From: Eutreptiella sp. 'Long Island Sound 2002' | Lineage: Eukaryota; Protista; Euglenida | Length of the DNA stretch: 64,000 nucleotides | Assembly (NCBI GenBank): GCA_964036045.1 | Contig: OZ038379.1 | Span: forward strand, 32,860,001-32,924,000 | Reading direction: 5' to 3' | In this document: positions 9,542 to 64,000 of the stretch, piece after piece | Layout: each line of letters starts with the position of its first letter | Position numbering within the stretch: position 1 is the stretch's first letter | The notes under the pieces: generated by a model | Databases searched by the model: none | Seen by the model: only the letters and a program-made list of their open reading frames with translations | What the model was told of the DNA's origin: nothing | Position numbers and translations under genes: made by a program

Positions 9542-9559
9542 TTGTGGCGGTATAGGGTG

Positions 9560-29966: not shown

Positions 29967-29968
<2 letters not shown>

Positions 29969-30918: not shown

Positions 30919-30926
30919 GAGGCTTT

Positions 30927-35261: not shown

Positions 35262-36740
35262 TTACCGGCGCCCCGGGCCGCAGGTCAGGTGCTGGGCCCC
35301 AAGCCTTGTTGTAGCCCGGCGTCTGGTCCTCCACGTCGTAAAGCCCCTGGGCCGTCCTTGGAATCGCCCCCCACCCTGCTCTCCTGCAACGGTCCGTGAT
35401 GGACAAGTGGGCCCTAGACGGTCGCTTGAACCCATCTCCTCGTCTTCCCCTCCGTCGACGTCGATGGGGCCTCCCGAGATGAACCGCCGGCGTCCCGTGG
35501 CGCCGGCGCCGGGTCCACGGACCTCATGCCCTCCAGGAGTAGGTGCTCCTTTGGCAATGATACCGTGGTCTTTCCAGAGAAGCTCACTTCTGCGAGCGTT
35601 GTCCTGCTCCACAGGGTTTTCCACCACTTTTGGACCCCGGGGACCTCCATTGGGGCCTCCACTGCCCGCGCTTGGGCCCGACCTTGGAGGTTTGACTCCA
35701 TCGTAGAGCACGCGTTCACCTGCGGCGGTCAAAGAGTTCGGTGATACTGGGAGCCATAAGTCCCGGACATGCGTTTTTCGCCATCGAATGCCTTCATCGG
35801 CTAGCCAAGGCAATCTCGCCACGTGCAGGCATTCGAAATCGTCGGGGGGAGACACATACAAGTGCGCGACTTTGATGTTGCGCCATCTACCCCACCACAA
35901 GAGGTGCCGCCAAGGCAACCCGAGCCACCTAAGGTACGTGGCCCCTGCTCTTCGCCAGGAGTGCCATCTCGCCGAACATCTTTCCGACCCTTCCAAGAGC
36001 TGGGCCATACCCATTTCGAGGAAGGCTGCCCGACCCACTGCTGGTGCCTCTCCCGGCGCGATACGGCGTAACCACCAGGCCAATGCCCGAGCGTAGGGCC
36101 CGAGACGGTGTGTGACTTCACGTTGGTCCGGCTTGACCCCTTGGAACGTGATACCTGCTTTGGAGATATTAGATCGCCGTAGAGATGAGATATCCCCCAC
36201 CGTGCACAGGGCAGTGGATGACAGAACCGCTGCCGCATAGATCTTCCATTCCTGGGGATTCCCCCACCCTGGAGCAGGCTTCAGCCATGAGTGGAGGAGG
36301 TCACGTGCTGCAAATTGGCGGTCTCCCGGGGAATCCACTGATGCTTTTGATAAGCGCCACAGCCTGTCCCACCGTAATTGTGGGATCCAGCCCGGAGTGG
36401 CCACCGCCTTGAGTCCTGAAATACAACCCTTGGCTGTTCCGGCTTTCTGGCCCTAAGCAAACATGGACAGGAGGACCTTTTCACCCAATATCTGCATGTC
36501 GGTCGCTGGGATGGAGCCCCTAAACTGGGCAAATCGCCGTAAGTGGCTGGCATATGTCCGTCTGGTTGCTGGTCTCCAAGTCGACACCAGGCACACTGAT
36601 GGGCATTCCGTGGGGTCGGTCTCACCCAGGATTTGCCATGCGTCCACCACCGCCGGCCAATCGATGATACCCTGGGAAGCCATATGGGATTGCGTGAATT
36701 CGGAGCCCCTCCCCGTGAAGCGGTCCAGTCGTTGTAGCAT
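35262..36740 (-). pseudogene. Tyrosine recombinase of the retrotransposon; one in-frame TAG (36453-36455) and the first catalytic Arg replaced by Thr
   Basis: N-terminal STWRPATRRTYASHLRRFAQF (integrase core-binding-like), then in the same frame LCTVGDISSLRRSNI (box I), GVK, WHSWRRAGAT (HxxR, H at 35961-35963), WWGRW and HLY (Tyr at 35856-35858). Confidence 0.9.
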
Positions 36741-39700
36741 TTCCGATGTCTCCAACGGCCGGACTGCCAGATCCCGTTACTCCGGCCGGAGGCAAATCCA
36801 CACCCAGTGCCGCTCGATGAGCCCGTGCCCCTTGCAGGTCTTGCAGGGTCCCACTTGGGCGGAATATGATCTGACCCACTCTCCTTTATGCACCTCGAAG
36901 GATCCAACTCCATCTACCACTTTAAACCAACATAGCATGACCTTTTTAAGACGCCCCCCCCCCCCCCCGAGGCTCATACCTGCCGTGAAATCCACGTCCG
37001 CTGACGCTTGCTGAGAGGAACTTGACTCTGTTTCATACCTTTCTTTATAACAGTGGATGGACGACCAAACCAGCAGCCAAAGGGACTCAATCATCAAGAC
37101 CGCCGAACTATTCAAGGATAGCACAGCAGGGGGTGTGTCTAGGCTTCCGTCCGTAGGGGTATCTCCTGAAGCTCCTCCGGCCCCCACCACCTCAGCCCAT
37201 ACCGTGGTGTCTTTCGTGTGCTCCTCCGACAGGTTGCACAACAGCGGCTTCTGTGCTCCATCATCCCATTGGGGGGTCATGCGCATGGAGTCTAAGGGCA
37301 GGGAATCCTTAAGGACCGCATACTTGAAGTAATGGAGCACTCGTGTCACCCACTGGGGATGGTTCCACACCAGGGCCAGGTCATGCAACTCCTTAAGACA
37401 CAGCGGCGGCACAGCCTTTTCGCGGCGCTCGGGTGCCTCCGATAGGTTGTTGACCTTGTCGGAGAGGGAGTTGATGAGGGCGGCCTATCCTTCCAAGAGA
37501 CTCAGCACGGCGGGGTCAATAGCCTTACCTGTATCCTCTGCAGGCACATGGATCTTTTCAAAAGCTCCGGAGGCAATGTTAAGCTGCACCTGCTTTGTCA
37601 TGGTGTACCCAATTAGGTTTTCGACGAGCGCTTCTTTTGTCCCCGTGAATCCCGCTGCCGCATAGATCTTCCATTCCTGGGGATTCCCCCACCCTGGAGC
37701 AGGCTTCAGCCATGAGTGGAGGAGGTCACGTGCTGCAAATTGGCGGTCTCCCGGGGAATCCACTGATGCTTTTGATAAGCGCCACAGCCTGTCCCACCGT
37801 AATTGTGGGATCCAGCCCGGAGTGGCCACCGCCTTGAGTCCTGAAATACAACCCTTGGCTGTTCCGGCTTTCTGGCCCTAAGCAAACATGGAGAGGAGGA
37901 CCTTTTCACCCAATATCTGCATGTCGGTCGCTGGGATGGAGCCCCTAAACTGGGCAAATCGCCGTAAGTGGCTGGCATATGTCCGTCTGGTTGCTGGTCT
38001 CCAAGTCGACACCAGGCACACTGATGGGCATTCCGTGGGGTCGGTCTCACCCAGGATTTGCCATGCGTCCACCACCGCCGGCCAATCGATGATACCCTGG
38101 GAAGCCATATGGGATTGCGTGAATTCGGAGCCCCTCCCCGTGAAGCGGTCCAGTCGTTGTAGCATTTCCGATGTGTCCAACGGCCGGACTGCCAGATCCC
38201 GTTACTCCGGCCGGAGGCAAATCCACACCCAGTGCCGCTCGATGAGCCCGTGCCCCTTGCAGGTCTTGCAGGGTCCCACTTGGACGGAATATGATCCGAC
38301 CCACTCTCCTTTATGCACCTCGAAGGATCCAACTCCATCTACCACTTTAAACCAACATAGCATGACCTTTTTAAGACGCCCCCCCCCCCCCGAGGCTCAT
38401 ACTTGCCGTGAAATCCACGTCCGCTGACGCTTGCTGAGAGGAACTTGACTCTGTTTCATACCTTTCTTTATAACAGTGGATGGACGACCAAACCAGCAGC
38501 CAAAGGGACTCAATCATCAAGACCGCCGAACTATTCAAGGATAGCACAGCAGGGGGCGTGTCTAGGCTTCCGTCCGTAGGGGTATCTCCTAAAGCTCCTC
38601 CGGCCCCCACCACCTCAGCCCATACCGTGGTGTCTTTCGTGTGCTCCTCCGACAGGTTGCACAACAGCGACTTCTGTGCTCCATCATCCCATTGGGGGGT
38701 CATGCGCATGGAGTCTAAGGGCAGGGAATCCTTAAGGACCGCATACTTGAAGTAATGGAGCACTCGTGTCACCCACTGGGGATGGTTCCACACCAGGGCC
38801 AGGTCATGCAACTCCTTAAGACACAGCGGCGGCACAGCCTTTTCGCGGCGCTCGGGTGCCTCCGATAGGTTGTTGACCTTGTCGGAGAGGGAGTTGATGA
38901 GGGCGGCCTATCCTTCCAAGAGACTCAGCACGGCGGGGTCAATAGCCTTACCTGTATCCTCTGCAGGCACATGGATCTTTTCAAAAGCTCCGGAGGCAAT
39001 GTTAAGCTGCACCTGCTTTGTCATGGTGTACCCAATTAGGTTTTCGACGAGCGCTTCTTTTGTCCCCGTGAATCCCGCTGCCGCATAGATCTTCCATTCC
39101 TGGGGATTCCCCCACCCTGGAGCAGGCTTCAGCCATGAGTGGAGGAGGTCACGTGCTGCAAATTGGCGGTCTCCCGGAGAATCCACTGATGCTTTTGATA
39201 AGCGCCACAGCCTGTCCCACCGTAATTGTGGGATCCAGCCCGGAGTGGCCACCGCCTTGAGTCCTGAAATACAACCCTTGGCTGTTCCGGCTTTCTGGCC
39301 CTAAGCAAACATGGACAGGAGGACCTTTTCACCCAATATCTGCATGTCGGTCGCTGGGATGGAGCCCCTAAACTGGGCAAATCGCCGTAAGTGGCTGGCA
39401 TATGTCCGTCTGGTTGCTGGTCTCCAAGTCGACACCAGGCACACTGATGGGCATTCCGTGGGGTCGGTCTCACCCAGGATTTGCCATGCGTCCACCACCG
39501 CCGGCCAATCGATGATACCCTGGGAAGCCATATGGGATTGCGTGAATTCGGAGCCCCTCCCCGTGAAGCGGTCCAGTCGTTGTAGCATTTCCGATGTGTC
39601 CAACGGCCGGACTGCCAGATCCCGTTACTCCGGCCGGAGGCAAATCCACACCCAGTGCCGCTCGATGAGCCCGTGCCCCTTGCAGGTCTTGCAGGGTCCC

Positions 39701-42700
39701 ACTTGGGCGGAATATGATCCGACCCACTCTCCTTTATGCACCTCGAAGGATCCAACTCCATCTACCACTTTAAACCAACATAGCATGACCTTTTTAAGAC
39801 GCCCCCCCCCCCCCCCCCGAGGCTCATACCTGCCGTGAAATCCAGGTCCGCTGACGCTTGCTGAGAGGAACTTGACTCTGTTTCATACCTTTCTTTATAA
39901 CAGTGGATGGACGACCAAACCAGCAGCCAAAGGGACTCAATCATCAAGACCGCCGAACTATTCAAGGATAGCACAGCAGGGGGCGTGTCTAGGCTTCCGT
40001 CCGTAGGGGTATCTCCTGAAGCTCCTCCGGCCCCCACCACCTCAGCCCATACCGTGGTGTCTTTCGTGTGCTCCTCCGACAGGTTGCACAACAGCGGCTT
40101 CTGTGCTCCATCATCCCATTGGGGGGTCATGCGCATGGAGTCTAAGGGCAGGGAATCCTTAAGGACCGCATACTTGAAGTAATGGAGCACTCGTGTCACC
40201 CACTGGGGATGGTTCCACACCAGGGCCAGGTCATGCAACTCCTTAAGACACAGCGGCGGCACAGCCTTTTCGCGGCGCTCGGGTGCCTCCGATAGGTTGT
40301 TGACCTTGTCGGAGAGGGAGTTGATGAGGGCGGCCTATCCTTCCAAGAGACTCAGCACGGCGGGGTCAATAGCCTTACCTGTATCCTCTGCAGGCACATG
40401 GATCTTTTCAAAAGCTCCGGAGGCAATGTTAAGCTGCACCTGCTTTGTCATGGTGTACCCAATTAGGTTTTCGACGAGCGCTTCTTTTGTCCCCGTGAAT
40501 CCCGCTGCCGCATAGATCTTCCATTCCTGGGGATTCCCCCACCCTGGAGCAGGCTTCAGCCATGAGTGGAGGAGGTCACGTGCTGCAAATTGGCGGTCTC
40601 CCGGGGAATCCACTGATGCTTTTGATAAGCGCCACAGCCTGTCCCACCGTAATTGTGGGATCCAGCCCGGAGTGGCCACCGCCTTGAGTCCTGAAATACA
40701 ACCCTTGGCTGTTCCGGCTTTCTGGCCCTAAGCAAACATGGAGAGGAGGACCTTTTCACCCAATATCTGCATGTCGGTCGCTGGGATGGAGCCCCTAAAC
40801 TGGGCAAATCGCCGTAAGTGGCTGGCATATGTCCGTCTGGTTGCTGGTCTCCAAGTCGACACCAGGCACACTGATGGGCATTCCGTGGGGTCGGTCTCAC
40901 CCAGGATTTGCCATGCGTCCACCACCGCCGGCCAATCGATGATACCCTGGGAAGCCATATGGGATTGCGTGAATTCGGAGCCCCTCCCCGTGAAGCGGTC
41001 CAGTCGTTGTAGCATTTCCGATGTGTCCAACGGCCGGACTGCCAGATCCCGTTACTCCGGCCGGAGGCAAATCCACACCCAGTGCCGCTCGATGAGCCCG
41101 TGCCCCTTGCAGGTCTTGCAGGGTCCCACTTGGGCGGAATATGATCCGACCCACTCTCCTTTATGCACCTCGAAGGATCCAACTCCATCTACCACTTTAA
41201 ACCAACATAGCATGACCTTTTTAAGACGCCCCCCCCGCCCCGAGGCTCATACCTGCCGTGAAATCCAGGTCCGCTGACGCTTGCTGAGAGGAACTTGACT
41301 CTGTTTCATACCTTTCTTTATAACAGTGGATGGACGACCAAACAAGCAGCCAAAGGGACTCAATCATCAAGACCGCCGAACTATTCAAGGATAGCACAGC
41401 AGGGGGCGTGTCTAGGCTTCCGTCCGTAGGGGTATCTCCTGAAGCTCCTCCGGCCCCCACCACCTCAGCCCATACCGTGGTGTCTTTCGTGTGCTCCTCC
41501 GACAGGTTGCACAACAGCGACTTCTGTGCTCCATCATCCCATTGGGGGGTCATGCGCATGGAGTCTAAGGGTAGGGAATCCTTAAGGACCGCATACTTGA
41601 AGTAATGGAGCACTCGTGTCACCCACTGGGGATGGTTCCACACCAGGGCCAGGTCATGCAACTCCTTAAGACACAGCGGCGGCACAGCCTTTTCGCGGCG
41701 CTCGGGTGCCTCCGATAGGTTGTTGACCTTGTCGGAGAGGGAGTTGATGAGGGCGGCCTATCCTTCCAAGAGACTCAGCACGGCGGGGTCAATAGCCTTA
41801 CCTGTATCCTCTGCAGGCACATGGATCTTTTCAAAAGCTCCGGAGGCAATGTTAAGCTGCACCTGCTTTGTCATGGTGTACCCAATTAGGTTTTCGACGA
41901 GCGCTTCTTTTGTCCCCGTGAATCCCGCTGCCGCATAGATCTTCCATTCCTGGGGATTCCCCCACCCTGGAGCAGGCTTCAGCCATGAGTGGAGGAGGTC
42001 ACGTGCTGCAAATTGGCGGTCTCCCGGGGAATCCACTGATGCTTTTGATAAGCGCCACAGCCTGTCCCACCGTAATTGTGGGATCTAGCCCGGAGTGGCC
42101 ACCGCCTTGAGTCCTGAAATACAACCCTTGGCTGTTCCGGCTTTCTGGCCCTAAGCAAACATGGAGAGGAGGACCTTTTCACCCAATATCTGCATGTCGG
42201 TCGCTGGGATGGAGCCCCTAAACTGGGCAAATCGCCGTAAGTGGCTGGCATATGTCCGTCTGGTTGCTGGTCTCCAAGTCGAAACCAGGCACACTGATGG
42301 GCATTCCGTGGGGTCGGTCTCACCCAGGATTTGCCATGCGTCCACCACCGCCGGCCAATCGATGATACCCTGGGAAGCCATATGGGATTGCGTTAATTCG
42401 GAGCCCCTCCCCGTGAAGCGGTCCAGTCGTTGTAGCATTTCCGATGTGTCCAACGGCCGGACTGCCAGATCCCGTTACTCCGGCCGGAGGCAAATCCACA
42501 CCCAGTGCCGCTCGATGAGCCCGTGCCCCTTGCAGGTCTTGCAGGGTCCCACTTGGGCGGAATATGATCCGACCCACTCTCCTTTATGCACCTCGAAGGA
42601 TCCAACTCCATCTACCACTTTAAACCAACATAGCATGACCTTTTTAAGACGCCCCCCCCCCCCCCAGGGCTCATACTTGCCGTGAAATCCAGGTCCGCTG

Positions 42701-45700
42701 ACGCTTGCTGAGAGGAACTTGACTCTGTTTCATACCTTTTTTTATAACAGTGGATGGACGACCAAACCAGCAGCCAAAGGGACTCAATCATCAAGACCGC
42801 CGAACTATTCAAGGATAGCACAGCAGGGGGTGTGTCTAGGCTTCCGTCCGTAGGGGTATCTCCTGAAGCTCCTCCGGCCCCCACCACCTCAGCCCATACC
42901 GTGGTGTCTTTCGTGTGCTCCTGCGACAGGTTGCACAACACCGGCTTCTGTGCTCCATCATCCCATTGGGGGGTCATGTGCATGGAGTCTAAGGGTAGGG
43001 AATCCTTAAGGACCGCATACTTGAAGTAATGGAGCACTCGTGTCACCCACTGGGGATGGTTCCACACCAGGGCCAGGTCATGCAACTCCTTAAGACACAG
43101 CGGCGGCACAGCCTTTTCGCGGCGCTCGGGTGCCTCCGATAGGTTGTTGACCTTGTCGGAGAGGGAGTTGATGAGGGCGGCCTATCCTTCCAAGAGACTC
43201 AGCACGGCGGGGTCAATAGCCTTACCTGTATCCTCTGCAGGCACATGGATCTTTTCAAAAGCTCCGGAGGCAATGTTAAGCTGCACCTGCTTTGTCATGG
43301 TGTACCCAATTAGGTTTTCGACGAGCGCTTCTTTTGTCCCCGTGAATCCCGCTGCCGCATAGATCTTCCATTCCTGGGGATTCCCCCACCCTGGAGCAGG
43401 CTTCAGCCATGAGTGGAGGAGGTCACGTGCTGCAAATTGGCGGTCTCCCGGGGAATCCACTGATGCTTTTGATAAGCGCCACAGCCTGTCCCACCGTAAT
43501 TGTGGGATCTAGCCCGGAGTGGCCACCGCCTTGAGTCCTGAAATACAACCCTTGGCTGTTCCGGCTTTCTGGCCCTAAGCAAACATGGAGAGGAGGACCT
43601 TTTCACCCAATATCTGCATGTCGGTCGCTGGGATGGAGCCCCTAAACTGGGCAAATCGCCGTAAGTGGCTGGCATATGTCCGTCTGGTTGCTGGTCTCCA
43701 AGTCGAAACCAGGCACACTGATGGGCATTCCGTGGGGTCGGTCTCACCCAGGATTTGCCATGCGTCCACCACCGCCGGCCAATCGATGATACCCTGGGAA
43801 GCCATATGGGATTGCGTGAATTCGGAGCCCCTCCCCGTGAAGCGGTCCAGTCGTTGTAGCATTTCCGATGTGTCCAACGGCCGGACTGCCAGATCCCGTT
43901 ACTCCGGCCGGAGGCAAATCCACACCCAGTGCCGCTCGATGAGCCCGTGCACCTTGCAGGTCTTGCAGGGTCCCACTTGGGCGGAATATGATCCGACCCA
44001 CTCTCCTTTATGCACCTCGAAGGATCCAACTCCATCTACCACTTTAAACCAACATAGCATGACCTTTTTAAGACGCCCCCCCCCCCGAGGCTCATACCTG
44101 CCGTGAAATCCATGTCCGCTGACGCTTGCTGAGAGGAACTTGACTCTGTTTCATACCTTTCTTTATAACAGTGGATGGACGACCAAACCAGCAGCCAAAG
44201 GGACTCAATCATCAAGACCGCCGAACTATTCAAGGATAGCACAGCAGGGGGCGTGTCTAGGCTTCCGTCCGTAGGGGTATCTCCTGAAGCTCCTCCGGCC
44301 CCCACCACCTCAGCCCATACCGTGGTGTCTTTCGTGTGCTCCTCCGACAGGTTGCACAACAGCGACTTCTGTGCTCCATCATCCCATTGGGGGGTCATGC
44401 GCATGGAGTCTAAGGGCAGGGAATCCTTAAGGACCGCATACTTGAAGTAATGGAGCACTCGTGTCACCCACTGGGGATGGTTCCACACCAGGGCCAGGTC
44501 ATGCAACTCCTTAAGACACAGCGGCGGCACAGCCTTTTCGCGGCGCTCGGGTGCCTCCGATAGGTTGTTGACCTTGTCGGAGAGGGAGTTGATGAGGGCG
44601 GCCTATCCTTCCAAGAGACTCAGCACGGCGGGGTCAATAGCCTTACCTGTATCCTCTGCAGGCACATGGATCTTTTCAAAAGCTCCGGAGGCAATGTTAA
44701 GCTGCACCTGCTTTGTCATGGTGTACCCAACTAGGTTTTCGACGAGCGCTTCTTTTGTCCCCGTGAATCCCGCTGCCGCATAGATCTTCCATTCCTGGGG
44801 ATTCCCCCACCCTGGAGCAGGCTTCAGCCATGAGTGGAGGAGGTCACGTGCTGCAAATTGGCGGTCTCCCGGGGAATCCACTGATGCTTTTGATAAGCGC
44901 CACAGCCTGTCCCACCGTAATTGTGGGATCCAGCCCGGAGTGGCCACCGCCTTGAGTCCTGAAATACAACCCTTGGCTGTTCCGGCTTTCTGGCCCTAAG
45001 CAAACATGGAGAGGAGGACCTTTTCACCCAATATCTGCATGTCGGTCGCTGGGATGGAGCCCCTAAACTGGGCAAATCGCCGTAAGTGGCTGGCATATGT
45101 CCGTCTGGTTGCTGGTCTCCAAGTCGACACCAGGCACACTGATGGGCATTCCGTGGGGTCGGTCTCACCCAGGATTTGCCATGCGTCCACCACCGCCGGC
45201 CAATCGATGATACCCTGGGAAGCCATATGGGATTGCGTGAATTCGGAGCCCCTCCCCGTGAAGCGGTCCAGTCGTTGTAGCATTTCCGATGTGTCCAACG
45301 GCCGGACTGCCAGATCCCGTTACTCCGGCCGGAGGCAAATCCACACCCAGTGCCGCTCGATGAGCCCGTGCCCCTTGCAGGTCTTGCAGGGTCCCACTTG
45401 GGCGGAATATGATCCGACCCACTCTCCTTTATGCACCTCGAAGGATCCAACTCCATCTACCACTTTAAACCAACATAGCATGACCTTTTTAAGACGCCCC
45501 CCCCCCCCGAGGCTCATACTTGCCGTGAAATCCACGTCCGCTGACGCTTGCTGAGAGGAACTTGACTCTGTTTCATACCTTTCTTTATAACAGTGGATGG
45601 ACGACCAAACCAGCAGCCAAAGGGACTCAATCATCAAGACCGCCGAACTATTCAAGGATAGCACAGCAGGGGGCGTGTCTAGGCTTCCGTCCGTAGGGGT

Positions 45701-48700
45701 ATCTCCTGAAGCTCCTCCGGCCCCCACCACCTCAGCCCATACCGTGGTGTCTTTCTTGTGCTCCTCCGACAGGTTGCACAACAGCGGCTTTTGTGCTCCA
45801 TCATCCCATTGGGGGGTCATGCGCATGGAGTCTAAGGGCAGGGAATCCTTAAGGACCGCATACTTGAAGTAATGGAGCACTCGTGTCACCCACTGGGGAT
45901 GGTTCCACACCAGGGCCAGGTCATGCAACTCCTTAAGACACAGCGGCGGCACAGCCTTTTCGCGGCGCTCGGGTGCCTCCGATAGGTTGTTGACCTTGTC
46001 GGAGAGGGAGTTGATGAGGGCGGCCTATCCTTCCAAGAGACTCAGCACGGCGGGGTCAATAGCCTTACCTGTATCCTCTGCAGGCACATGGATCTTTTCA
46101 AAAGCTCCGGAGGCAATGTTAAGCTGCACCTGCTTTGTCATGGTGTACCCAATTAGGTTTTCGACGAGCGCTTCTTTTGTCCCCGTGAATCCCGCTGCCG
46201 CATAGATCTTCCATTCCTGGGGATTCCCCCACCGTGGAGCAGGCTTCAGCCATGAGTGGAGGAGGTCACGTGCTGCAAATTGGCGGTCTCCCGGGGAATC
46301 CACTGATGCTTTTGATAAGCGCCACAGCCTGTCCCACCGTAATTGTGGGATCCAGCCCGGAGTGGCCACCGCCTTGAGTCCTGAAATACAACCCTTGGCT
46401 GTTCCGGCTTTCTGGCCCTAAGCAAACATGGAGAGGAGGACCTTTTCACCCAATATCTGCATGTCGGTCGCTGGGATGGAGCCCCTAAACTAGGCAAATC
46501 GCCGTAAGTGGCTGGCATATGTCCGTCTGGTTGCTGGTCTCCAAGTCGACACCAGGCACACTGATGGGCATTCCGTGGGGTCGGTCTCACCCAGGATTTG
46601 CCATGCGCCACCACCGCCGGCCAATCGATGATACCCTGGGAAGCCATATGGGATTGCGTGAATTCGGAGCCCCTCCCCGTGAAGCGGTCCAGTCGTTGTA
46701 GCATTTCCGATGTGTCCAACGGCCGGACTGCCAGATCCCGTTACTCCGGCCGGAGGCAAATCCACACCCAGAGCCGCTCGATGAGCCCGTGCCCCTTGCA
46801 GGTCTTGCAGGGTCCCACTTGGGCGGAATATGATCCGACCCACTCTCCTTTATGCACCTCGAAGGATCCAACTCCATCTACCACTTTAAACCAACATAGC
46901 ATGACCTTTTTAAGACGCCCCCCCCCCCCCCCCCGAGGCTCATACCTGCCGTGAAATCCAGGTCCGCTGACGCTTGCTGAGAGGAACTTGACTCTGTTTC
47001 ATACCTTTCTTTATAACAGTGGATGGACGACCAAACCAGCAGCCAAAGGGACTCAATCATCAAGACCGCCGAACTATTCAAGGATAGCACAGCAGGGGGC
47101 GTGTCTAGGCTTCCGTCCGTAGGGGTATCTCCTGAAGCTCCTCCGGCCCCCACCACCTCAGCCCATACCGTGGTGTCTTTCTTGTGCTCCTGCGACAGGT
47201 TGCACAACAGCGGCTTCTGTGCTCCATCATCCCATTGGGGGGTCATGCGCATGGAGTCTAAGGGCAGGGAATCCTTAAGGACCGCATACTTGAAGTAATG
47301 GAGCACTCGTGTCACCCACTGGGGATGGTTCCACACCAAGGCCAGGTCATGCAACTCCTTAAGACACAGCGGCGGCACAGCCTTTTCGCGGCGCTCGGGT
47401 GCCTCCGATAGGTTGTTGACCTTGTCGGAGAGGGAGTTGATGAGGGCGGCCTATCCTTCCAAGAGACTCAGCACGGCGGGGTCAATAGCCTTACCTGTAT
47501 CCTCTGCAGGCACATGGATCTTTTCAAAAGCTCCGGAGGCAATGTTAAGCTGCACCTGCTTTGTCATGGTGTACCCAATTAGGTTTTCGACGAGCGCTTC
47601 TTTTGTCCCCGTGAATCTCGCTGCCGCATAGATCTTCCATTCCTGGGGATTCCCCCACCCTGGAGCAGGCTTCAGCCATGAGTGGAGGAGGTCACGTGCT
47701 GCAAATTGGCGGTCTCCCGGGGAATCCACTGATGCTTTTGATAAGCGCCACAGCCTGTCCCACCGTAATTGTGGGATCCAGCCCGGAGTGGCCACCGCCT
47801 TGAGTCCTGAAATACAACCCTTGGCTGTTCCGGCTTTCTGGCCCTAAGCAAACATGGAGAGGAGGACCTTTTCACCCAATATCTGCATGTCGGTCGCTGG
47901 GATGGAGCCCCTAAACTGGGCAAATCGCCGTAAGTGGCTGGCATATGTCCGTCTGGTTGCTGGTCTCCAAGTCGACACCAGGCACACTGATGGGCATTCC
48001 GTGGGGTCGGTCTCACCCAGGATTTGCCATGCGTCCACCACCGCCGGCCAATCGATGATACCCTGGGAAGCCATATGGGATTGCGTGAATTCGGAGCCCC
48101 TCCCCGTGAAGCGGTCCAGTCGTTGTAGCATTTCCGATGTGTCCAACGGCCGGACTGCCAGATCCCGTTACTCCGGCCGGAGGCAAATCCACACCCAGTG
48201 CCGCTCGATGAGCCCGTGCCCCTTGCAGGTCTTGCAGGGTCCCACTTGGGCGGAATATGATCCGACCCACTCTCCTTTATGCACCTCGAAGGATCCAACT
48301 CCATCTACCACTTTAAACCAACATAGCATGACCTTTTTAAGACGCCCCCCCCGCCCCGAGGCTCATACCTGCCGTGAAATCCAGGTCCGCTGACGCTTGC
48401 TGAGAGGAACTTGACTCTGTTTCATACCTTTCTTTATAACAGTGGATGGACGACCAAACCAGCAGCCAAAGGGACTCAATCATCAAGACCGCCGAACTAT
48501 TCAAGGATAGCACAGCAGGGGGCGTGTCTAGGCTTCCGTCCGTAGGGGTATCTCCTGAAGCTCCTCCGGCCCCCACCACCTCAGCCCATACCGTGGTGTC
48601 TTTCTTGTGCTCCTCCGACAGGTTGCACAACAGCGGCTTCTGTGCTCCATCATCCCATTGGGGGGTCATGCGCATGGAGTCTAAGGGCAGGGAATCCTTA

Positions 48701-51700: not shown

Positions 51701-54700
51701 ATTGATGAGGGCGGCCTATCCTTCCAAGAGACTCAGCACGGCGGGGTCAATAGCCTTACATGTATCCTCTGCAGGCACATGGATCTTTTCAAAAGCTCCG
51801 GAGGCAATGTTAAGCTGCACCTGCTTTGTCATGGTGTACCCAATTAGGTTTTCGACGAGCGCTTCTTTTGTCCCCGTGAATCCCGCTGCCGCATAGATCT
51901 TCCATTCCTGGGGATTCCCCCACCCTGGAGCAGGCTTCAGCCATGAGTGGAGGAGGTCACGTGCTGCAAATTGGCGGTCTCCCGGGGAATCCACTGATGC
52001 TTTTGATAAGCGCCACAGCCTGTCCCACCGTAATTGTGGGATCCAGCCCGGAGTGGCCACCGCCTTGAGTCCTGAAATACAACCCTTGGCTGTTCCGGCT
52101 TTCTGGCCCTAAGCAAACATGGAGAGGAGGACCTTTTCACCCAATATCTGCATGTCGGTCGCTGGGATGGAGCCCCTAAACTGGGCAAATCGCCGTAAGT
52201 GGCTGGCATATGTCCGTCTGGTTGCTGGTCTCCAAGTCGACACCAGGCACACTGATGGGCATTCCGTGGGGTCGGTCTCACCCAGGATTTGCCATGCGTC
52301 CACCACCGCCGGCCAATCGATGATACCCTGGGAAGCCATATGGGATTGCGTGAATTCGGAGCCCCTCCCCGTGAAGCGGTCCAGTCGTTGTAGCATTTCC
52401 GATGTGTCCAACGGCCGGACTGCCAGATCCCGTTACTCCGGCCGGAGGCAAATCCACACCCAGTGCCGCTCGATGAGCCCGTGCCCCTTGCAGGTCTTGC
52501 AGGGTCCCACTTGGGCGGAATATGATCCGACCCACTCTCCTTTATGCACCTCGAAGGATCCAACTCCATCTACCACTTTAAACCAACATAGCATGACCTT
52601 TTTAAGACGCCCCCCCCCCCCGAGGCTCATACCTGCCGTGAAATCCAGGTCCGCTGACGCTTGCTGAGAGGAACTTGACTCTGTTTCATACCTTTCTTTA
52701 TAACAGTGGATGGACGACCAAACCAGCAGCCAAAGGGACTCAATCATCAAGACCGCCGAACTATTCAAGGATAGCACAGCAGGGGGCGTGTCTAGGCTTC
52801 CGTCCGTAGGGGTATCTCCTGAAGCTCCTCCGGCCCCCACCACCTCAGCCCATACCGTGGTGTCTTTCTTGTGCTCCTCCGACAGGTTGCACAACAGCGG
52901 CTTCTGTGCTCCATCATCCCATTGGGGGGTCATGCGCATGGAGTCTAAGGGCAGGGAATCCTTAAGGACCGCATACTTGAAGTAATGGAGCACTCGTGTC
53001 ACCCACTGGGGATGGTTCCACACCAGGGCCAGGTCATGCAACTCCTTAAGACACAGCGGCGGCACAGCCTTTTCGCGGCGCTCGGGTGCCTCCGATAGGT
53101 TGTTGACCTTGTCGGAGAGGGAGTTGATGAGGGCGGCCTATCCTTCCAAGAGACTCAGCACGGCGGGGTCAATAGCCTTACCTGTATCCTCTGCAGGCAC
53201 ATGGATCTTTTCAAAAGCTCCGGAGGCAATGTTAAGCTGCACCTGCTTTGTCATGGTGTACCCAATTAGGTTTTCGACGAGCGCTTCTTTTGTCCCCGTG
53301 AATCCCGCTGCCGCATAGATCTTCCATTCCTGGGGATTCCCCCACCCTGGAGCAGGCTTCAGCCATGAGTGGAGGAGGTCACGTGCTGCAAATTGGCGGT
53401 CTCCCGGGGAATCCACTGATGATTTGATAAGCGCCACAGCCTGTCCCACCGTAATTGTGGGATCCAGCCCGGAGTGGCCACCGCCTTGAGTCCTGAAATA
53501 CAACCCTTGGCTGTTCCGGCTTTCTGGCCCTAAGCAAACATGGAGAGGAGGACCTTTTCACCCAATATCTGCATGTCGGTCGCTGGGATGGAGCCCCTAA
53601 ACTGGGCAAATCGCCGTAAGTGGCTGGCATATGTCCGTCTGGTTGCTGGTCTCCAAGTCGACACCAGGCACACTGATGGGCAATCCGTGGGGTCGGTCTC
53701 ACCCAGGATTTGCCATGCGCCCACCACCGCCGGCCAATCGATGATACCCTGGGAAGCCATATGGGATTGCGTGAATTCGGAGCCCCTGCCCGTGAAGCGG
53801 TCCAGTCGTTGTAGCATTTCCGATGTGTCCAACGGCCGGACTGCCAGATCCCGTTACTCCGGCCGGAGGCAAATCCACACCCAGTGCCGCTCGATGAGCC
53901 CGTGCCCCTTGCAGGTCTTGCAGGGTCCCACTTGGGCGGAATATGATCCGACCCACTCTCCTTTATGCACCTCGAAGGATCCAACTCCATCTACCACTTT
54001 AAACCAACATAGCATGACCTTTTTAAGACGCCCCCCCCCCCTCGAGGCTCATACTTGCCGTGAAATCCAGGTCCGCTGACGCTTGCTGAGAGGAACTTGA
54101 CTCTGTTTCATACCTTTCTTTATAACAGTGGATGGACGACCAAACCAGCAGCCAAAGGGACTCAATCATCAAGACCGCCGAACTATTCAAGGATAGCACA
54201 GCAGGGGGCGTGTCTAGGCTTCCGTCCGTAGGGGTATCTCCTGAAGCTCCTCCGGCCCCCACCACCTCAGCCCATACCGTGGTGTCTTTCTTGTGCTCCT
54301 CCGACAGGTTGCACAACAGCGGCTTCTGTGCTCCATCATCCCATTGGGGGGTCATGCGCATGGAGTCTAAGGGCAGGGAATCCTTAAGGACCTCATACTT
54401 GAAGTAATGGAGCACTCGTGTCACCCACTGGGGATGGTTCCACACCAGGGCCAGGTCATGCAACTCCTTAAGACACAGCGGCGGCACAGCCTTTTCGCGG
54501 CGCTCGGGTGCCTCCGATAGGTTGTTGACCTTGTCGGAGAGGGAGTTGATGAGGGCGGCCTATCCTTCCAAGAGACTCAGCACGGCGGGGTCAATAGCCT
54601 TACCTGTATCCTCTGCAGGCACATGGATCTTTTCAAAAGCTCCGGAGGCAATGTTAAGCTGCACCTGCTTTGTCATGGTGTACCCAATTAGGTTTTCGAC

Positions 54701-57700
54701 GAGCGCTTCTTTTGTCCCCGTGAATCCCGCTGCCGCATAGATCTTCCATTCCTGGGGATTCCCCCACCCTGGAGCAGGCTTCAGCCATGAGTGGAGGAGG
54801 TCACGTGCTGCAAATTGGCGGTCTCCCGGGGAATCCACTGATGCTTTTGATAAGCGCCACAGCCTGTCCCACCGTAATTGTGGGATCCAGCCCGGAGTGG
54901 CCACCGCCCTGAGTCCTGAAATACAACCCTTGGCTGTTCCGGCTTTCTGGCCCTAAGCAAACATGGAGAGGAGGACCTTTTCACCCAATATCTGCATGTC
55001 GGTCGCTGGGATGGAGCCCCTAAACTGGGCAAATCGCCGTAAGTGGCTGGCATATGTCCGTCTGGTTGCTGGTCTCCAAGTCGACACCAGGCACACTGAT
55101 GGGCAATCCGTGGGGTCGGTCTCACCCAGGATTTGCCATGCGTCCACCACCGCCGGCCAATCGATGATACCCTGGGAAGCCATATGGGATTGCGTGAATT
55201 CGGAGCCCCCGCCCGTGAAGCGGTCCAGTCGTTGTAGCATTTCCGATGTGTCCAACGGCCGGACTGCCAGATCCCGTTACTCCGGCCGGAGGCAAATCCA
55301 CACCCAGTGCCGCTCGATGAGCCCGTGCCCCTTGCAGGTCTTGCAGGGTCCCACTTGGGCGGAATATGATCCGACCCACTCTCCTTTATGCACCTCGAAG
55401 GATCCAACTCCATCTACCACTTTAAACCAACATAGCATGACCTTTTTAAGACGCCCCCCCCCCCCCCTCGAGGCTCATACCTGCCGTGAAATCCAGGTCC
55501 GCTGATGCTTGCTGAGAGGAACTTGACTCTGTTTCATACCTTTCTTTATAGCAGTGGATGGACGACCAAACCAGCAGCCAAAGGGACTCAATCATCAAGA
55601 CCGCCGAACTATTCAAGGAAAGCACAGCAGGGGGCGTGTCTAGGCTTCCGTCCGTAGGGGTATCTCCTGAAGCTCCTCCGGCCCCCACCACCTCAGCCCA
55701 TACCGTGGTGTCTTTCTTGTGCTCCTCCGACAGGTTGCACAACAGCGGCTTCTGTGCTCCATCATCCCATTGGGGGGTCATGCGCATGGAGTCTAAGGGC
55801 AAGGAATCCTTAAGGACCGCATACTTGAAGTAATGGAGCACTCGTGTCACCCACTGGGGATGGTTCCACACCAGGGCCAGGTCATGCAACTCCTTAAGAC
55901 ACAGCAGCGGCACAGCCTTTTCGCGGCGCTCGGGTGCCTCCGATAGGTTGTTGACCTTGTCGGAGAGGGAGTTGATGAGGGCGGCCTATCCTTCCAAGAG
56001 ACTCAGCACGGCGGGGTCAATAGCCTTACCTGTATCCTCTGCAGGCACATGGATCTTTTCAAAAGCTCCGGAGGCAATGTTAAGCTGCACCTGCTTTGTC
56101 ATGGTGTACCCAATTAGGTTTTCGACGAGCGCTTCTTTTGTCCCCGTGAATCCCGCTGCCGCATAGATCTTCCATTCCTGGGGATTCCCCCACCCTGGAG
56201 CAGGCTTCAGCCATGAGTGGAGGAGGTCACGTGCCGCAAATTGGCGGTCTCCCGGGGAATCCACTGATGCTTTTGATAAGCGCCACAGCCTGTCCCACCG
56301 TAATTGTGGGATCCAGCCCGGAGTGGCCACCGCCTTGAGTCCTGAAATACAACCCTTGGCTGTTCCGGCTTTCTGGCCCTAAGCAAACATGGAGAGGAGG
56401 ACCTTTTCACCCAATATCTGCATGTCGGTCGCTGGGATGGAGCCCCTAAACTGGGCAAATCGCCGTAAGTGGCTGGCATATGTCCGTCTGGTTGCTGGTC
56501 TCCAAGTCGACACCAGGCACACTGATGGGCATTCCGTGGGGTCGGTCTCACCCAGGATTTGCCATGCGTCCACCACCGCCGGCCAATCGATGATACCCTG
56601 GGAAGCCATATGGGATTGCGTGAATTCGGAGCCCCTCCCCGTGAAGCGGTCCAGTCGTTGTAGCATTTCCGATGTGTCCAACGGCCGGACTGCCAGATCC
56701 CGTTACTCCGGCCGGAGGCAAATCCACACCCAGTGCCGCTCGATGAGCCCGTGCCCCTTGCAGGTCTTGCAGGGTCCCACTTGGGCGGAATATGATCCGA
56801 CCCACTCTCCTTTATGCACCTCGAAGGATCCAACTCCATCTACCACTTTAAACCAACATAGCATGACCTTTTTAAGACGCCCCCCCCCCCCCCCGAGGCT
56901 CATACCTGCCGTGAAATCCAGGTCCGCTGACGCTTGCTGAGAGGAACTTGACTCTGTTTCATACCTTTCTTTATAACAGTGGATGGACGACCAAACCAGC
57001 AGCCAAAGGGACTCAATCATCAAGACCGCCGAACTATTCAAGGATAGCACAGCAGGGGGTGTGTCTAGGCTTCCGTCCGTAGGGGTATCTCCTGAAGCTA
57101 CTCCGGCCCCCACCACCTCAGCCCATACCGTGGTGTCTTTCTTGTGCTCCTCCGACAGGTTGCACAACAGCGGCTTCTGTGCTCCATCATCCCATTGGGG
57201 GGTCATGCGCATGGAGTCTAAGGGCAGGGAATCCTTAAGGACCGCATACTTGAAGTAATGGAGCACCCGTGTCACCCATTGGGGATGGTTCCACACCAGG
57301 GCCAGGTCATGCAACTCCTTAAGACACAGCGGCGGCACAGCCTTTTCGCGGCGCTCGGGTGCCTCCGATAGGTTGTTGACCTTGTCGGAGAGGGAGTTGA
57401 TGAGGGCGGCCTATCCTTCCAAGAGACTCAGCACAGCGGGGTCAATAGCCTTACCTGTATCCTCTGCAGGCACATGGATCTTTTCAAAAGCTCCGGAGGC
57501 AATGTTAAGCTGCACTTGCTTTGTCATGGTGTACCCAATTAGGTTTTCGACGAGCGCTTCTTTTGTCCCCGTGAATCCCGCTGCCGCATAGATCTTCCAT
57601 TCCTGGGGATTCCCCCACCCTGGAGCAGGCTTCAGCCATGAGTGGAGGAGGTCACGTGCTGCAAATTGGCGGTCTCCCGGGGAATCCACTGATGCTTTTA

Positions 57701-60700
57701 ATAAGCGCCACAGCCTGTCCCACCGTAATTGTGGGATCCAGCCCGGAGTGGCCACCGCCTTGAGTCCTGAAATACAACCCTTGGCTGTTCCGGCTTTCTG
57801 GCCCTAAGCAAACATGGAGAGGAGGACCTTTTCACCCAATATCTGCATGTCGGTCGCTGGGATGGAGCCCCTAAACTGGGCAAATCGCCGTAAGTGGCTG
57901 GCATATGTCCGTCTGGTTGCTGGTCTCCAAGTCGACACCACGCACACTGATGGGCATTCCGTGGGGTCGGTCTCACCCAGGATTTGCCATGCGTCCACCA
58001 CCGCCGGCCAATCGATGATACCCCGGGAAGCCATATGGGATTGCGTGAATTCGGAGCCCCTCCCCGTGAAGCGGTCCAGTCGTTGTAGCATTTCCGATGT
58101 GTCCAACGGCCGGACTGCCAGATCCCGTTACTCCGGCCGGAGGCAAATCCACACCCAGTGCCGCTCGATGAGCCCGTGCCCCTTGCAGGTCTTGCGGGGT
58201 CCCACTTGGGCGGAATATGATCCGACCCACTCTCCTTTATGCACCTCGAAGGATCCAACTCCATCTACCACTTTAAACCAACATAGCATGACCTTTTTAA
58301 GACGCCCCCCCCCCGAGGCTCATACCTGCCGTGAAATCGAGGTCCGCTGACGCTTGCTGAGAGGAACTTGACTCTGTTTCATACCTTTCTTTATAACAGT
58401 GGATGGACGACCAAACCAGCAGCCAAAGGGACTCAATCATCAAGACCGCCGAACTATTCAAGGATAGCACAGCAGGGGGCGTGTCTAGGCTTCCGTCCGT
58501 AGGGGTATCTCCTGAAGCTCCTCCGGCCCCCACCACCTCAGCCCATACCGTGGTGTCTTTCTTGTGCTCCTCCGACAGGTTGCACAACAGCGGCTTCTGT
58601 GCTCCATCATCCCATTGGGGGGTCATGCGCATGGAGTCTAAGGGCAGGGAATCCTTAAGGACCGCATACTTGAAGTAATGGAGCACCCGTGTCACCCACT
58701 GGGGATGGTTCCACACCAGGGCCAGGTCATGCAACTCCTTAAGACACAGCGGCGGCACAGCCTTTTCGCGGCGCTCGGGTGCCTCCGATAGGTTGTTGAC
58801 CTTGTCGGAGAGGGAGTTGATGAGGGCGGCCTATCCTTCCAAGAGACTCAGCACGGCGGGGTCAATAGCCTTACCTGTATCCTCTGCAGGCACATGGATC
58901 TTTTCAAAAGCTCCGGAGGCAATGTTAAGCTGCACTTGCTTTGTCATGGTGTACCCAATTAGGTTTTCGACGAGCGCTTCTTTTGTCCCCGTGAATCCCG
59001 CTGCCGCATAGATCTTCCATTCCTGGGGATTCCCCCACCCTGGAGCAGGCTTCAGCCATGAGTGGAGGAGGTCACGTGCTGCAAATTGGCGGTCTCCCGG
59101 GGAATCCACTGATGCTTTTGATAAGCGCCACAGCCTGTCCCACCGTAATTGTGGGATCCAGCCCGGAGTGGCCACCGCCTTGAGTCCTGAAATACAACCC
59201 TTGGCTGTTCCGGCTTTCTGGCCCTAAGCAAACATGGAGAGGAGGACCTTTTCACCCAATATCTGCATGTCGGTCGCTGGGATGGAGCCCCTAAACTGGG
59301 CAAATCGCCGTAAGTGGCTGGCATATGTCCGTCTGGTTGCTGGTCTCCAAGTCGACACCACGCACACTGATGGGCATTCCGTGGGGTCGGTCTCACCCAG
59401 GATTTGCCATGCGTCCACCACCGCCGGCCAATCGATGATACCCTGGGAAGCCATATGGGATTGCGTGAATTCGGAGCCCCTCCCCGTGAAGCGGTCCAGT
59501 CGTTGTAGCATTTCCGATGTGTCCAACGGCCGGACTGCCAGATCCCGTTACTCCGGCCGGAGGCAAATCCACACCCAGTGCCGCTCGATGAGCCCGTGCC
59601 CCTTGCAGGTCTTGCGGGGTCCCACTTGGGCGGAATATGATCCGACCCACTCTCCTTTATGCACCTCGAAGGATCCAACTCCATCTACCACTTTAAACCA
59701 ACATAGCATGACCTTTTTAAGACGCCCCCCCCCCCCCCCCGAGGCTCATACCTGCCGTGAAATCGAGGTCCGCTGACGCTTGCTGAGAGGAACTTGACTC
59801 TGTTTCATACCTTTCTTTATAACAGTGGATGGACGACCAAACCAGCAGCCAAAGGGACTCAATCATCAAGACCGCCGAACTATTCAAGGATAGCACAGCA
59901 GGGGGCGTGTCTAGGCTTCCGTCCGTAGGGGTATCTCCTGAAGCTCCTCCGGCCCCCACCACCTCAGCCCATACCGTGGTGTCTTTCTTGTGCTCCTCCG
60001 ACAGGTTGCACAACAGCGGCTTCTGTGCTCCATCATCCCATTGGGGGGTCATGCGCATGGAGTCTAAGGGCAGGGAATCCTTAAGGACCGCATACTTGAA
60101 GTAATGGAGCACCCGTGTCACCCACTGGGGATGGTTCCACACCAGGGCCAGGTCATGCAACTCCTTAAGACACAGCGGCGGCACAGCCTTTTCGCGGCGC
60201 TCGGGTGCCTCCGATAGGTTGTTGACCTTGTCGGAGAGGGAGTTGATGAGGGCGGCCTATCCTTCCAAGAGACTCAGCACGGCGGGGTCAATAGCCTTAC
60301 CTGTATCCTCTGCAGGCACATGGATCTTTTCAAAAGCTCCGGAGGCAATGTTAAGCTGCACTTGCTTTGTCATGGTGTACCCAATTAGGTTTTCGACGAG
60401 CGCTTCTTTTGTCCCCGTGAATCCCGCTGCCGCATAGATCTTCCATTCCTGGGGATTCCCCCACCCTGGAGCAGGCTTCAGCCATGAGTGGAGGAGGTCA
60501 CGTGCTGCAAATTGGCGGTCTCCCGGGGAATCCACTGATGCTTTTGATAAGCGCCACAGCCTGTCCCACCGTAATTGTGGGATCCAGCCCGGAGTGGCCA
60601 CCGCCTTGAGTCCTGAAATACAACCCTTGGCTGTTCCGGCTTTCTGGCCCTAAGCGAACATGGAGAGGAGGACCTTTTCACCCAATATCTGCATGTCGGT

Positions 60701-63700
60701 CGCTGGGATGGAGCCCCTAAACTGGGCAAATCGCCGTAAGTGGCTGGCATATGTCCGTCTGGTTGCTGGTCTCCAAGTCGACACCACGCACACTGATGGG
60801 CATTCCGTGGGGTCGGTCTCACCCAGGATTTGCCATGCGTCCACCACCGCCGGCCAATCGATGATACCCTGGGAAGCCATATGGGATTGCGTGAATTCGG
60901 AGCCCCTCCCCGTGAAGCGGTCCAGTCGTTGTAGCATTTCCGATGTGTCCAACGGCCGGACTGCCAGATCCCGTTACTCCGGCCGGAGGCAAATCCACAC
61001 CCAGTGCCGCTCGATGAGCCCGTGCCCCTTGCAGGTCTTGCGGGGTCCCACTTGGGCGGAATATGATCCGACCCACTCTCCTTTATGCACCTCGAAGGAT
61101 CCAACTCCATCTACCACTTTAAACCAACATAGCATGACCTTTTTAAGACGCCCCCCCCCCCCCGAGGCTCATACCTGCCGTGAAATCGAGGTCCGCTGAC
61201 GCTTGCTGAGAGGAACTTGACTCTGTTTCATACCTTTCTTTATAACAGTGGATGGACGACCAAACCAGCAGCCAAAGGGACTCAATCATCAAGACCGCCG
61301 AACTATTCAAGGATAGCACAGCAGGGGGCGTGTCTAGGCTTCCGTCCGTAGGGGTATCTCCTGAAGCTCCTCCGGCCCCCACCACCTCAGCCCATACCGT
61401 GGTGTCTTTCTTGTGCTCCTCCGACAGGTTGCACAACAGCGGCTTCTGTGCTCCATCATCCCATTGGGGGCTCATGCGCATGGAGTCTAAGGGCAGGGAA
61501 TCCTTAAGGACCGCATACTTGAAGTAATGGAGCACTCGTGTCACCCACTGGGGATGGTTCCACACCAGGGCCAGGTCATGCAACTCCTTAAGACACAGCG
61601 GCGGCACAGCCTTTTCGCGGCGCTCGGGTGCCTCCGATAGGTTGTTGACCTTGTCGGAGAGGGAGTTGATGAGGGCGGCCTATCCTTCCAAGAGACTCAG
61701 CACGGCGGGGTCAATAGCCTTACCTGTATCCTCTGCAGGCACATGGATCTTTTCAAAAGCTCCGGAGGCAATGTTAAGCTGCACCTGCTTTGTCATGGTG
61801 TACCCAATTAGGTTTTCGACGAGCGCTTCTTTTGTCCCCGTGAATCCCGCTGCCGCATAGATCTTCCATTCCTGGGGATTCCCCCACCCTGGAGCAGGCT
61901 TCAGCCATGAGTGGAGGAGGTCACGTGCCGCAAATTGGCGGTCTCCCGGGGAATCCACTGATGCTTTTGATAAGCGCCACAGCCTGTCCCACCGTAATTG
62001 TGGGATCCAGCCCGGAGTGGCCACCGCCTTGAGTCCTGAAATACAACCCTTGGCTGTTCCGGCTTTCTGGCCCTAAGCAAACATGGAGAGGAGGACCTTT
62101 TCACCCAATATCTGCATGTCGGTCGCTGGGATGGAGCCCCTAAACTGGGCAAATCGCCGTAAGTGGCTGGCATATGTCCGTCTGGTTGCTGGTCTCCAAG
62201 TCGACACCAGGCACACTGATGGGCATTCCGTGGGGTCGGTCTCACCCAGGATTTGCCATGCGTCAACCACCGCCGGCCAATCGATGATACCCTGGGAAGC
62301 CATATGGGATTGCGTGAATTCGGAGCCCCTCCCCGTGAAGCGGTCCAGTCGTTGTAGCATTTCCGATGTGTCCAACGGCCGGACTGCCAGATCCCGTTAC
62401 TCCGGCCGGAGGCAAATCCACACCCAGTGCCGCTCGATGAGCCCGTGCCCCTTGCAGGTCTTGCAGGGTCCCACTTGGGCGGAATATGATCCGACCCACT
62501 CTCCTTTATGCACCTCGAAGGATCCAACTCCATCTACCACTTTAAACCAACATAGCATGACCTTTTTAAGACGCCCCCCCCCCCCCCCGAGGCTCATACC
62601 TGCCGTGAAATCGAGGTCCGCTGACGCTTGCTGAGAGGAACTTGACTCTGTTTCATACCTTTCTTTATAACAGTGGATGGACGACCAAACCAGCAGCCAA
62701 AGGGACTCAATCATCAAGACCGCCGAACTATTCAAGGATAGCACAGCAGGGGGCGTGTCTAGGCTTCCGTCCGTAGGGGTATCTCCTGAAGCTCCTCCGG
62801 CCCCCACCACCTCAGCCCATACCGTGGTGTCTTTCTTGTGCTCCTCCGACAGGTTGCACAACAGCGGCTTCTGTGCTCCATCATCCCATTGGGGGGTCAT
62901 GCGCATGGAGTCTAAGGGCAGGGAATCCTTAAGGACCGCATACTTGAAGTAATGGAGCACTCGTGTCACCCACTGGGGATGGTTCCACACCAGGGCCAGG
63001 TCATGCAACTCCTTAAGACACAGCGGCGGCACAGCCTTTTCGCGGCGCTCGGGTGCCTCCGATAGGTTGTTGACCTTGTCGGAGAGGGAGTTGATGAGGG
63101 CGGCCTATCCTTCCAAGAGACTCAGCACGGCGGGGTCAATAGCCTTACCTGTATCCTCTGCAGGCACATGGATCTTTTCAAAAGCTCCGGAGGCAATGTT
63201 AAGCTGCACCTGCTTTGTCATGGTGTACCCAATTAGGTTTTCGACGAGCGCTTCTTTTGTCCCCGTGAATCCCGCTGCCGCATAGATCTTCCATTCCTGG
63301 GGATTCCCCCACCCTGGAGCAGGCTTCAGCCATGAGTGGAGGAGGTCACGTGCTGCAAATTGGCGGTCTCCCGGGGAATCCACTGATGCTTTTGATAAGC
63401 GCCACAGCCTGTCCCACCGTAATTGTGGGATCCAGCCCGGAGTGGCCACCGCCTTGAGTCCTGAAATACAACCCTTGGCTGTTCCGGCTTTCTGGCCCTA
63501 AGCAAACATGGAGAGGAGGACCTTTTCACCCAATATCTGCATGTCGGTCGCTGGGATGGAGCCCCTAAACTGGGCAAATCGCCGTAAGTGGCTGGCATAT
63601 GTCCGTCTGGTTGCTGGTCTCCAAGTCGACACCAGGCACACTGATGGGCATTCCGTGGGGTCGGTCTCACCCAGGATTTGCCATGCGTCCACCACCGCCG

Positions 63701-64000
63701 GCCAATCGATGATACCCTGGGAAGCCATATGGGATTGCGTGAATTCGGAGCCCCTCCCCGTGAAGCGGTCCAGTCGTTGTAGCATTTCCGATGTGTCCAA
63801 CGGCCGGACTGCCAGATCCCGTTACTCCGGCCGGAGGCAAATCCACACCCAGTGCCGCTCGATGAGCCCGTGCCCCTTGCAGGTCTTGCAGGGTCCCACT
63901 TGGGCGGAATATGATCCGACCCACTCTCCTTTATGCACCTCGAAGGATCCAACTCCATCTACCACTTTAAACCAACATAGCATGACCTTTTTAAGACGCC
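36227..64000. repeat. Head-to-tail tandem array of a 1,419-1,427-bp retrotransposon fragment, at least 19.5 copies, continuing past the window end
   Basis: Units start at about 36227, 37652, 39075, 40502, 41925, 43349, 44770, 46192, 47618, 49041, 50460, 51883, 53305, 54727, 56153, 57578, 58998, 60424, 61847 and 63272. Copies differ by a few SNPs and by poly-C length. Confidence 0.98.
36777..37651 (-). pseudogene. C-terminal part of a gag-like ORF1 with a C-x2-C-x8-H-x4-C knuckle (copy in unit 1; repeated in every unit)
   Basis: Frame GFTGTKEAL...LLEG*AALINSLSDKVNNLSE...PCKTCKGHGLIERHWVWICLRPE*; internal TAG at 37485-37487; lies directly upstream of YR. Confidence 0.6.

Follow-up and report, generated by a model that had tools for sequence, protein, structure and literature searches.

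The subject of this analysis is a stretch of 64,000 nucleotides (the window) from the euglenid Eutreptiella sp. 'Long Island Sound 2002' (contig OZ038379.1, positions 32,860,001 to 32,924,000 of the forward strand). The window holds the larger part of a tandem array in which an internal segment of a predicted tyrosine-recombinase (YR) retrotransposon is repeated head to tail, and the parent element still forms both flanks of the array. Comparison of the window joined to the 80 kb that follow it on the chromosome showed that the array has exactly 25 units and a length of 35,593 bp. It is probable that the array began as one microhomology duplication in a parent copy that was already dead and that host processes enlarged it stepwise and neutrally to 25 units.

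The tandem array

A BLAST comparison of one unit with the window returned 19.5 head-to-tail copies between 36227 and 64000 with identities of 98.7-99.8%. The top lag in the autocorrelation of the window was 1423, and the 1,423-bp periodicity is strong from 30 kb on. Tandem Repeats Finder (TRF), for which the longest period handled was 500, misses the array in the window. In the extended coordinates, which continue the window numbering downstream (L001 is the stretch directly after the window), the array ends at 71819 (L001:7819), 7,819 bp beyond the window end. The whole array corresponds to C2:32,896,227-32,931,819 on a chromosome of 193.5 Mb. The first-pass annotation of the window had described at least 19.5 near-identical head-to-tail units in an array of at least 27.8 kb, and the extension bears this out. 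The array and the unit to which the descriptions below refer are as follows.

36227-64000, minus strand: window part of the tandem array, 19.5 of the 25 units of about 1,423 bp
36230-37654, minus strand: unit u1, the 3'-most in the sense of the element, with the gag-like open reading frame (ORF) from about residue 26 to its end, then about 178 N-terminal residues of the YR

The same locus is found in a second assembly (ENA ERZ25074135, contig ctg8388_23x_l, 174 kb), which has no base mismatch over 41.5 kb compared in two stretches. The span between these two stretches is 10,975 bp in ERZ25074135 and 10,974 bp here, so the copy number agrees. The assemblies differ at only seven sites, and at each of these a long G/C homopolymer differs in length. 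Both probably rest on the same reads, in which case the assembler is independent and the data are not. ERZ25074135 is filed as a metagenome assembly, and both ctg8388_23x_l and ctg9997_29x_l are base-identical to the chromosome except in homopolymer lengths. The mean pairwise substitution difference among the 25 units is 0.72%. Unit lengths vary from 1,419 to 1,427 bp, and this variation is partly technical because two of the seven homopolymer differences between the assemblies fall in the poly-G tract of the unit.

The array has the marks of a retrotransposon-derived tandem repeat. Its units exceed the 1 kb set as a minimum and lie head to tail with high identity, each corresponds, in the same order and without interruption, to a part of a transposable element in which the segment occurs once (in about 35 dispersed copies), and a single array-specific junction is common to all units (24 junctions).

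Unit content and junctions

The reading frames of the unit were taken from a better-preserved relative, L019. The unit consists of nearly the whole gag-like ORF followed by the non-catalytic N-terminal part of the YR. Compared with L019, the gag-like ORF starts about 25 codons upstream of the 5' breakpoint of the unit, and the 3' breakpoint falls at YR residue ~178 (KIYAAA), about 10 residues ahead of the position of the catalytic Arg I. The first-pass annotation had assigned to the unit the C-terminus of gag, a Zn knuckle and the N-terminal part of the YR. The last of these holds, the gag portion is nearly complete rather than the C-terminus only, and the zinc-knuckle-like motif, which is kept across subfamilies at the end of the gag-like ORF, has a non-canonical spacing. 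Within u1 and across its junction with the next unit the following features were located.

36777-37412, minus strand: gag-like ORF part, ending in the conserved CCHC-like motif C-x2-C-x8-H-x4-C
36453-36755, minus strand: YR N-terminal piece, core-binding-like, ending at the stop after LLSMFA that is common to 25 of 25 units
37637-37670, no strand assigned: array-specific junction 34-mer, with the 3-bp CCG microhomology at 37652-37654
37485-37829, minus strand: junction-spanning ORF of 114 amino acids, in which KIYAAA of the YR is fused in frame to GFTGTKEAL of gag, ending at the gag stop after LSLLEG

Two premature stops are present in all 25 units, one in gag (after LSLLEG) and one in the recombinase N-terminus (after LLSMFA). 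In addition, 50 substitutions (3.5%) are common to all units and absent from five relatives. Because these stops and the fixed private substitutions are shared, while the diversity within the array is only 0.72%, the amplification, or the last homogenisation, is placed late in the history of this copy, when it was already dead. A translated fusion protein was considered for the junction-spanning ORF and rejected; the junction is in frame, but stops occur in every unit and the length of a unit is not divisible by three.

The internal junctions read GTGAATC-CCG-CTGCCGC. Of the 24, 23 are identical and the last carries one C>T change. In the parental flanks, the left side ends in GACAGAA before CCG and the right side begins with AGGCATT after CCG; CCG is thus found at both parental breakpoints as a 3-bp microhomology. 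The junction in the first-pass annotation, which began with GTGAATC, was correct, with the nuance that CCG is present at both breakpoints. That annotation also proposed a search for the junction at other loci. With up to 3 mismatches allowed, the junction 34-mer has 24 matches in the 2.28 Gb genome, every one of them inside the array, and none was found elsewhere.

The parent element and its family

Both flanks of the array belong to the parent element, which lies on the minus strand in the predicted order gag, YR, putative reverse transcriptase (RT), putative RNase H. By comparison with related copies, the element spans from about 29966 to extended coordinate 72067 and bears a deletion of ~200 bp near 31304. 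The parent is, as judged from its sequence, a tyrosine-recombinase retrotransposon of ~4.7 kb, and the copy is predicted to be old and already inactivated. Its recognisable parts are listed here.

29966-30246, minus strand: 3' split direct repeats (B2 29966-30017, A2 30114-30191, B1 30195-30246)
L001:7990-8067, extended 71990-72067, outside the window, minus strand: A1 repeat, the partner of A2
35262-36404, minus strand: ORF across the array boundary at 36227, with the YR catalytic domain; HxxR, W and Y are kept and Arg I is T
30430-31712, minus strand: what is left of the parent's putative RT and RNase H-like parts, degenerate
31712-34878, no strand assigned: nested 3.2-kb insertion, absent from five related copies, which splits the RT region of the parent

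The A repeat of the window element is 78 nt long with 88% identity and the B repeat 52 nt with 98% identity, and together they follow the order A1...B1A2...B2. The same layout of split direct repeats is seen in the relative L013. The array breakpoints do not coincide with the split repeats; they are placed 171 nt into the element beyond A1 and inside the coding sequence of the YR. In the recombinase region (window 35700-36404, minus strand), T replaces the catalytic Arg I and D replaces a neighbouring conserved E. The YR frame runs unbroken from the last unit into the flank (KIYAAA/VLSS), aligning at 67% with the better-preserved relative across the boundary. The first-pass annotation had the array run seamlessly into a full YR/RT/RNase H copy at 36227. 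The transition is indeed seamless; the copy is not full, being degenerate and interrupted by the 3.2-kb insertion. This insertion carries a minus-strand ORF of 474 amino acids (32189-33613) that has no Pfam match.

Pfam gave no match on the gag and YR ORFs of the window itself, and single-sequence phmmer searches against the PDB returned only noise. The YR assignment rests on a family profile made from 30 of 124 representative relatives that were obtained in an exhaustive search. Among solved structures this profile matches Cre (E 2.9e-7) and XerD (E 2.9e-5). Pfam PF00589 (Phage_integrase) is matched by 10 of the 30 family members and not by the window copy. Within the family, the columns that hardly vary are those of the YR catalytic signature (R, K, HxxR and Y), which places the family among the tyrosine recombinases. 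The matches to RVT_1 (E 0.0018) and RVT_3 (E 0.0016-0.0054) are weak in these degenerate copies and below the Pfam cut-offs; RNase H is matched in the family protein P0031 with an E value of 2.8e-10, and inspection of L013 by eye shows RT motifs.

Five related copies have 81-89% identity and some 30 more have 72-75%; each carries the segment once and contiguous. The full-element alignment took in five of the ~35 dispersed copies. In the 2.28-Gb genome no copy closer than 89% to the unit was found elsewhere. Homologue searches gave no match to named proteins, the relatives being unnamed ENA proteins only. In a word-indexed search, all 40 of 40 recombinase homologues came from ENA and were unnamed.

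Growth of the array

The parental flanks, together with the single copy of the segment in other members of the family, uphold the proposal of the first-pass annotation that an internal segment became a tandem array in place. The manner of growth can be read from differences among the units. There are 77 ungapped variable sites, of which 30 are common to at least two units, and the minority state is almost always derived with respect to outgroup copies. Neighbouring units are more alike than in shuffled orders (lag 1, p<5e-5; lag 2, p=0.0036). The substitutions among the units comprise 50 transitions and 31 transversions, and this bias fits real mutation rather than read error.

These data were compared with a model in which all units arise in one burst and then decay independently, with tenfold CpG hypermutability (5,000 runs). 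Under this model 7.2 shared derived sites and 0.67 adjacent carrier pairs are expected, and the maxima reached were 19 and 5, respectively; the array has 30 and 29. The units consequently do not show the star-like genealogy by which rolling-circle amplification or an origin from extrachromosomal circular DNA would be recognised.

Individual derived variants also sit in runs of adjacent units. Five of them are carried by u15-17 in their right parts and by u16-18 in their left parts, and this block is one mutated unit that has been tripled in a shifted register. Three derived variants are found in u4-5 on the right and in u5-6 on the left, and one derived G is common to u1-6. The u15-18, u4-6 and u1-6 blocks are local re-duplications. 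The one-burst model alone is rejected, and the pattern is best read as a single duplication at a microhomology that was followed by unequal exchange in steps. Unequal crossing-over, one of the two routes offered by the first-pass annotation, is therefore supported by the likeness of neighbours, the runs of derived variants and the rejection of a single burst.

We propose that the array would have started with one tandem duplication of the internal 1,423-bp segment, from gag codon ~26 to a point shortly ahead of the YR catalytic domain. Because the breakpoints share only CCG, microhomology most likely mediated this founding event, which may have been a template switch during replication or end joining between sister chromatids. 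The duplication would then have grown and turned over stepwise to 25 units, in any register, with unequal exchange between sister chromatids, slippage during replication and gene conversion as the presumed mechanisms. On this reading the array is neutral and arose at one locus as a side effect of recombination and replication in the host, and it is one of several arrays with kb-sized units in a genome rich in repeats. Two other arrays with kb-sized units on the same chromosome favour such a host-level process. One has units of 1,097 bp with ~99% identity and ends at C2:1790562 (C2:1780001-1790562 was compared, and the array extends further left); the other has units of 1,979 bp with ~98.5% identity and ends near C2:13114626 (C2:13100001-13114626 was compared, and it too extends further left).

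Alternative explanations

Three points weigh against stepwise growth from a microhomology duplication as set out above. A 3-bp microhomology is expected by chance in ~5% of random joints, an array founded from a circle and followed by later exchange would look alike today, and the copy number rests on two assemblies that probably derive from the same reads. The second of these points describes an alternative in which a 1.42-kb circle was excised at CCG, copied by a rolling circle and returned to the parent by homologous recombination, with later exchange producing the pattern of variants. Such a route would leave the same structure, with its identical junctions and its flanks from the parent; circular intermediates have been proposed for YR retrotransposons, and Euglena keeps its ribosomal DNA on extrachromosomal circles. 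We nevertheless regard it as unlikely, given that a single burst alone is rejected, that the breakpoints are not at the split repeats (the recombination sites of the element), that the YR and gag of this copy were already broken, and that no copy of the junction exists elsewhere in the genome. A link to the element's own recombinase is likewise not supported, given the two stops in all units, the T at Arg I and the distance of the breakpoints from the split repeats. The possibility that the recombinase of the element made the array was rejected, since the breakpoints lie inside the YR coding sequence and the copy was already dead; a role in cis for any of the element's enzymes is argued against because the copy was dead before the amplification. 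A more general version is considered quite improbable; in it, any 1-2-kb segment of the genome could be made into an array of 20-odd units by a general route, perhaps by way of small extrachromosomal circles, in an organism that has its ribosomal DNA on circles already. If it were true, the array would be a datable snapshot of that route with the parental flanks and the founding microhomology joint preserved.

It could also be argued that the tandem structure exists with an inflated or collapsed number of units, or that the whole array is spurious. Homopolymer lengths do differ between the two assemblies and an N gap is located ~52 kb downstream of the array. An assembly artefact is nonetheless very unlikely, as the second assembly has the same inter-anchor length without a mismatch over the compared 41.5 kb, and the unit-specific, transition-biased variants in runs of neighbours are unlike the duplications made by assemblers. 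Least probable of all is a functional array, which would act as a centromeric or heterochromatin-nucleating satellite or as a source of small RNAs against the family. The neighbourhood is rich in repeats, and transposon-derived arrays elsewhere are transcribed, for example CRM1TR (PMC3648361). Against this stand the single 35.6-kb locus, the uniqueness of the junction in 2.28 Gb and the identity of only 72-89% between the units and other copies of the family. The strict definition of a satellite calls for many long arrays or several loci; here the junction occurs in one array, and the other copies are single and at most 89% identical. The array is a single-locus macrosatellite and not a satellite family, and the centromeric or heterochromatic role suggested in the first-pass annotation is not supported by one locus on a 193.5-Mb chromosome that holds all 24 junctions.

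Genomic setting

Several other repeats were observed around the array. A two-copy tandem duplication of ~1,167 bp with 96% identity lies 4 kb past the array (L001:12104-14378, extended 76104-78378) and may be an array at its first stage. Further on, at extended ~103,000-130,000, pieces of 0.5-1.4 kb in both orientations with 80-94% identity surround a gap of 200 N at 123668. The window also has long GC-rich minisatellites at 5471-7551, 9539-10995 and 1154-1850. Their units are 47 nt, 23 nt and 50 nt long, and higher-order periodicities of 437 and 431 bp are present; the array of 23-nt units is found again, inverted, at extended 88-90 kb. In the published E. gracilis assembly, tandem repeats detectable by TRF make up 9.85% (PMC11252322).

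Throughout the genome, a 24-nt string of the Euglena spliced leader has 5,458 matches, dispersed on both strands (for example C1:29492-29515), and the reversed control has 0, as fits a euglenid host. So many scattered matches suggest that trans-spliced RNAs were retroposed or that the leader is part of mobile elements.

Comparison with known systems

Tandem arrays derived from retrotransposons are well documented and have been reviewed (PMC9659126, PMC6947457). The present locus adds no new principle and indicates no function. Its value is that the birth of a macrosatellite can be read from one bounded locus, which holds the parent, the breakpoints, the founding microhomology joint and the later re-duplications. 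In practice, the array could be used as a marker locus for copy-number variation among strains, and it calls for caution in repeat annotation, where its units inflate the apparent copy number of the family.

The maize arrays CRM1TR and CRM4TR are tandem repeats of centromeric retrotransposons that arose by illegitimate recombination and then gained length through conversion (Sharma et al. 2013, PMC3648361). They resemble the euglenid array in having a monomer that is a contiguous piece of a retrotransposon with its own junction, a start by illegitimate recombination, local enlargement and homogenisation, and a restriction to few loci (PMC3648361). The maize units differ in consisting of LTR (long terminal repeat) plus untranslated-region sequence of Ty3/gypsy elements, in lying near centromeres and in being transcribed (PMC3648361), whereas the euglenid unit is coding sequence (gag and the YR N-terminus) and its array still sits inside a parent with intact ends. 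In Lathyrus sativus, short tandem arrays that lie within LTR retrotransposons of the Ogre type have given rise to satellites (Vondrak et al. 2020, PMC7004042). There, as here, a tandem array within a retrotransposon was expanded in place (PMC7004042). The Ogre arrays are a standing feature of the family that spread with the element and have small monomers, in contrast to an array that is private to one dead copy and has a 1.4-kb monomer. The 16-kb repeats of the Chlamydomonas MT+ locus carry INT1, a YR fragment derived from DIRS (PMC9940879), and likewise contain a piece of a YR retrotransposon that is repeated in tandem at a single locus (PMC9940879). There the YR fragment rides along in a 17-kb unit that includes host genes, while the unit described here is purely element.

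The closest described architecture is that of VIPER/TATE from trypanosomatids, which have the gag, YR and RT/RNase H order predicted here, the split direct repeats and a host among the Euglenozoa; the likeness is one of layout. The euglenid family differs from VIPER/TATE in being unnamed and known from ENA records only, with no sequence-level match to named proteins. To our knowledge, no such array has been described before for a tyrosine-recombinase retrotransposon or from a euglenid. The case is set apart from the known systems by the class of element and the host, by a unit made of coding sequence, and by the preservation of the parent, the joints and the later history in one place.

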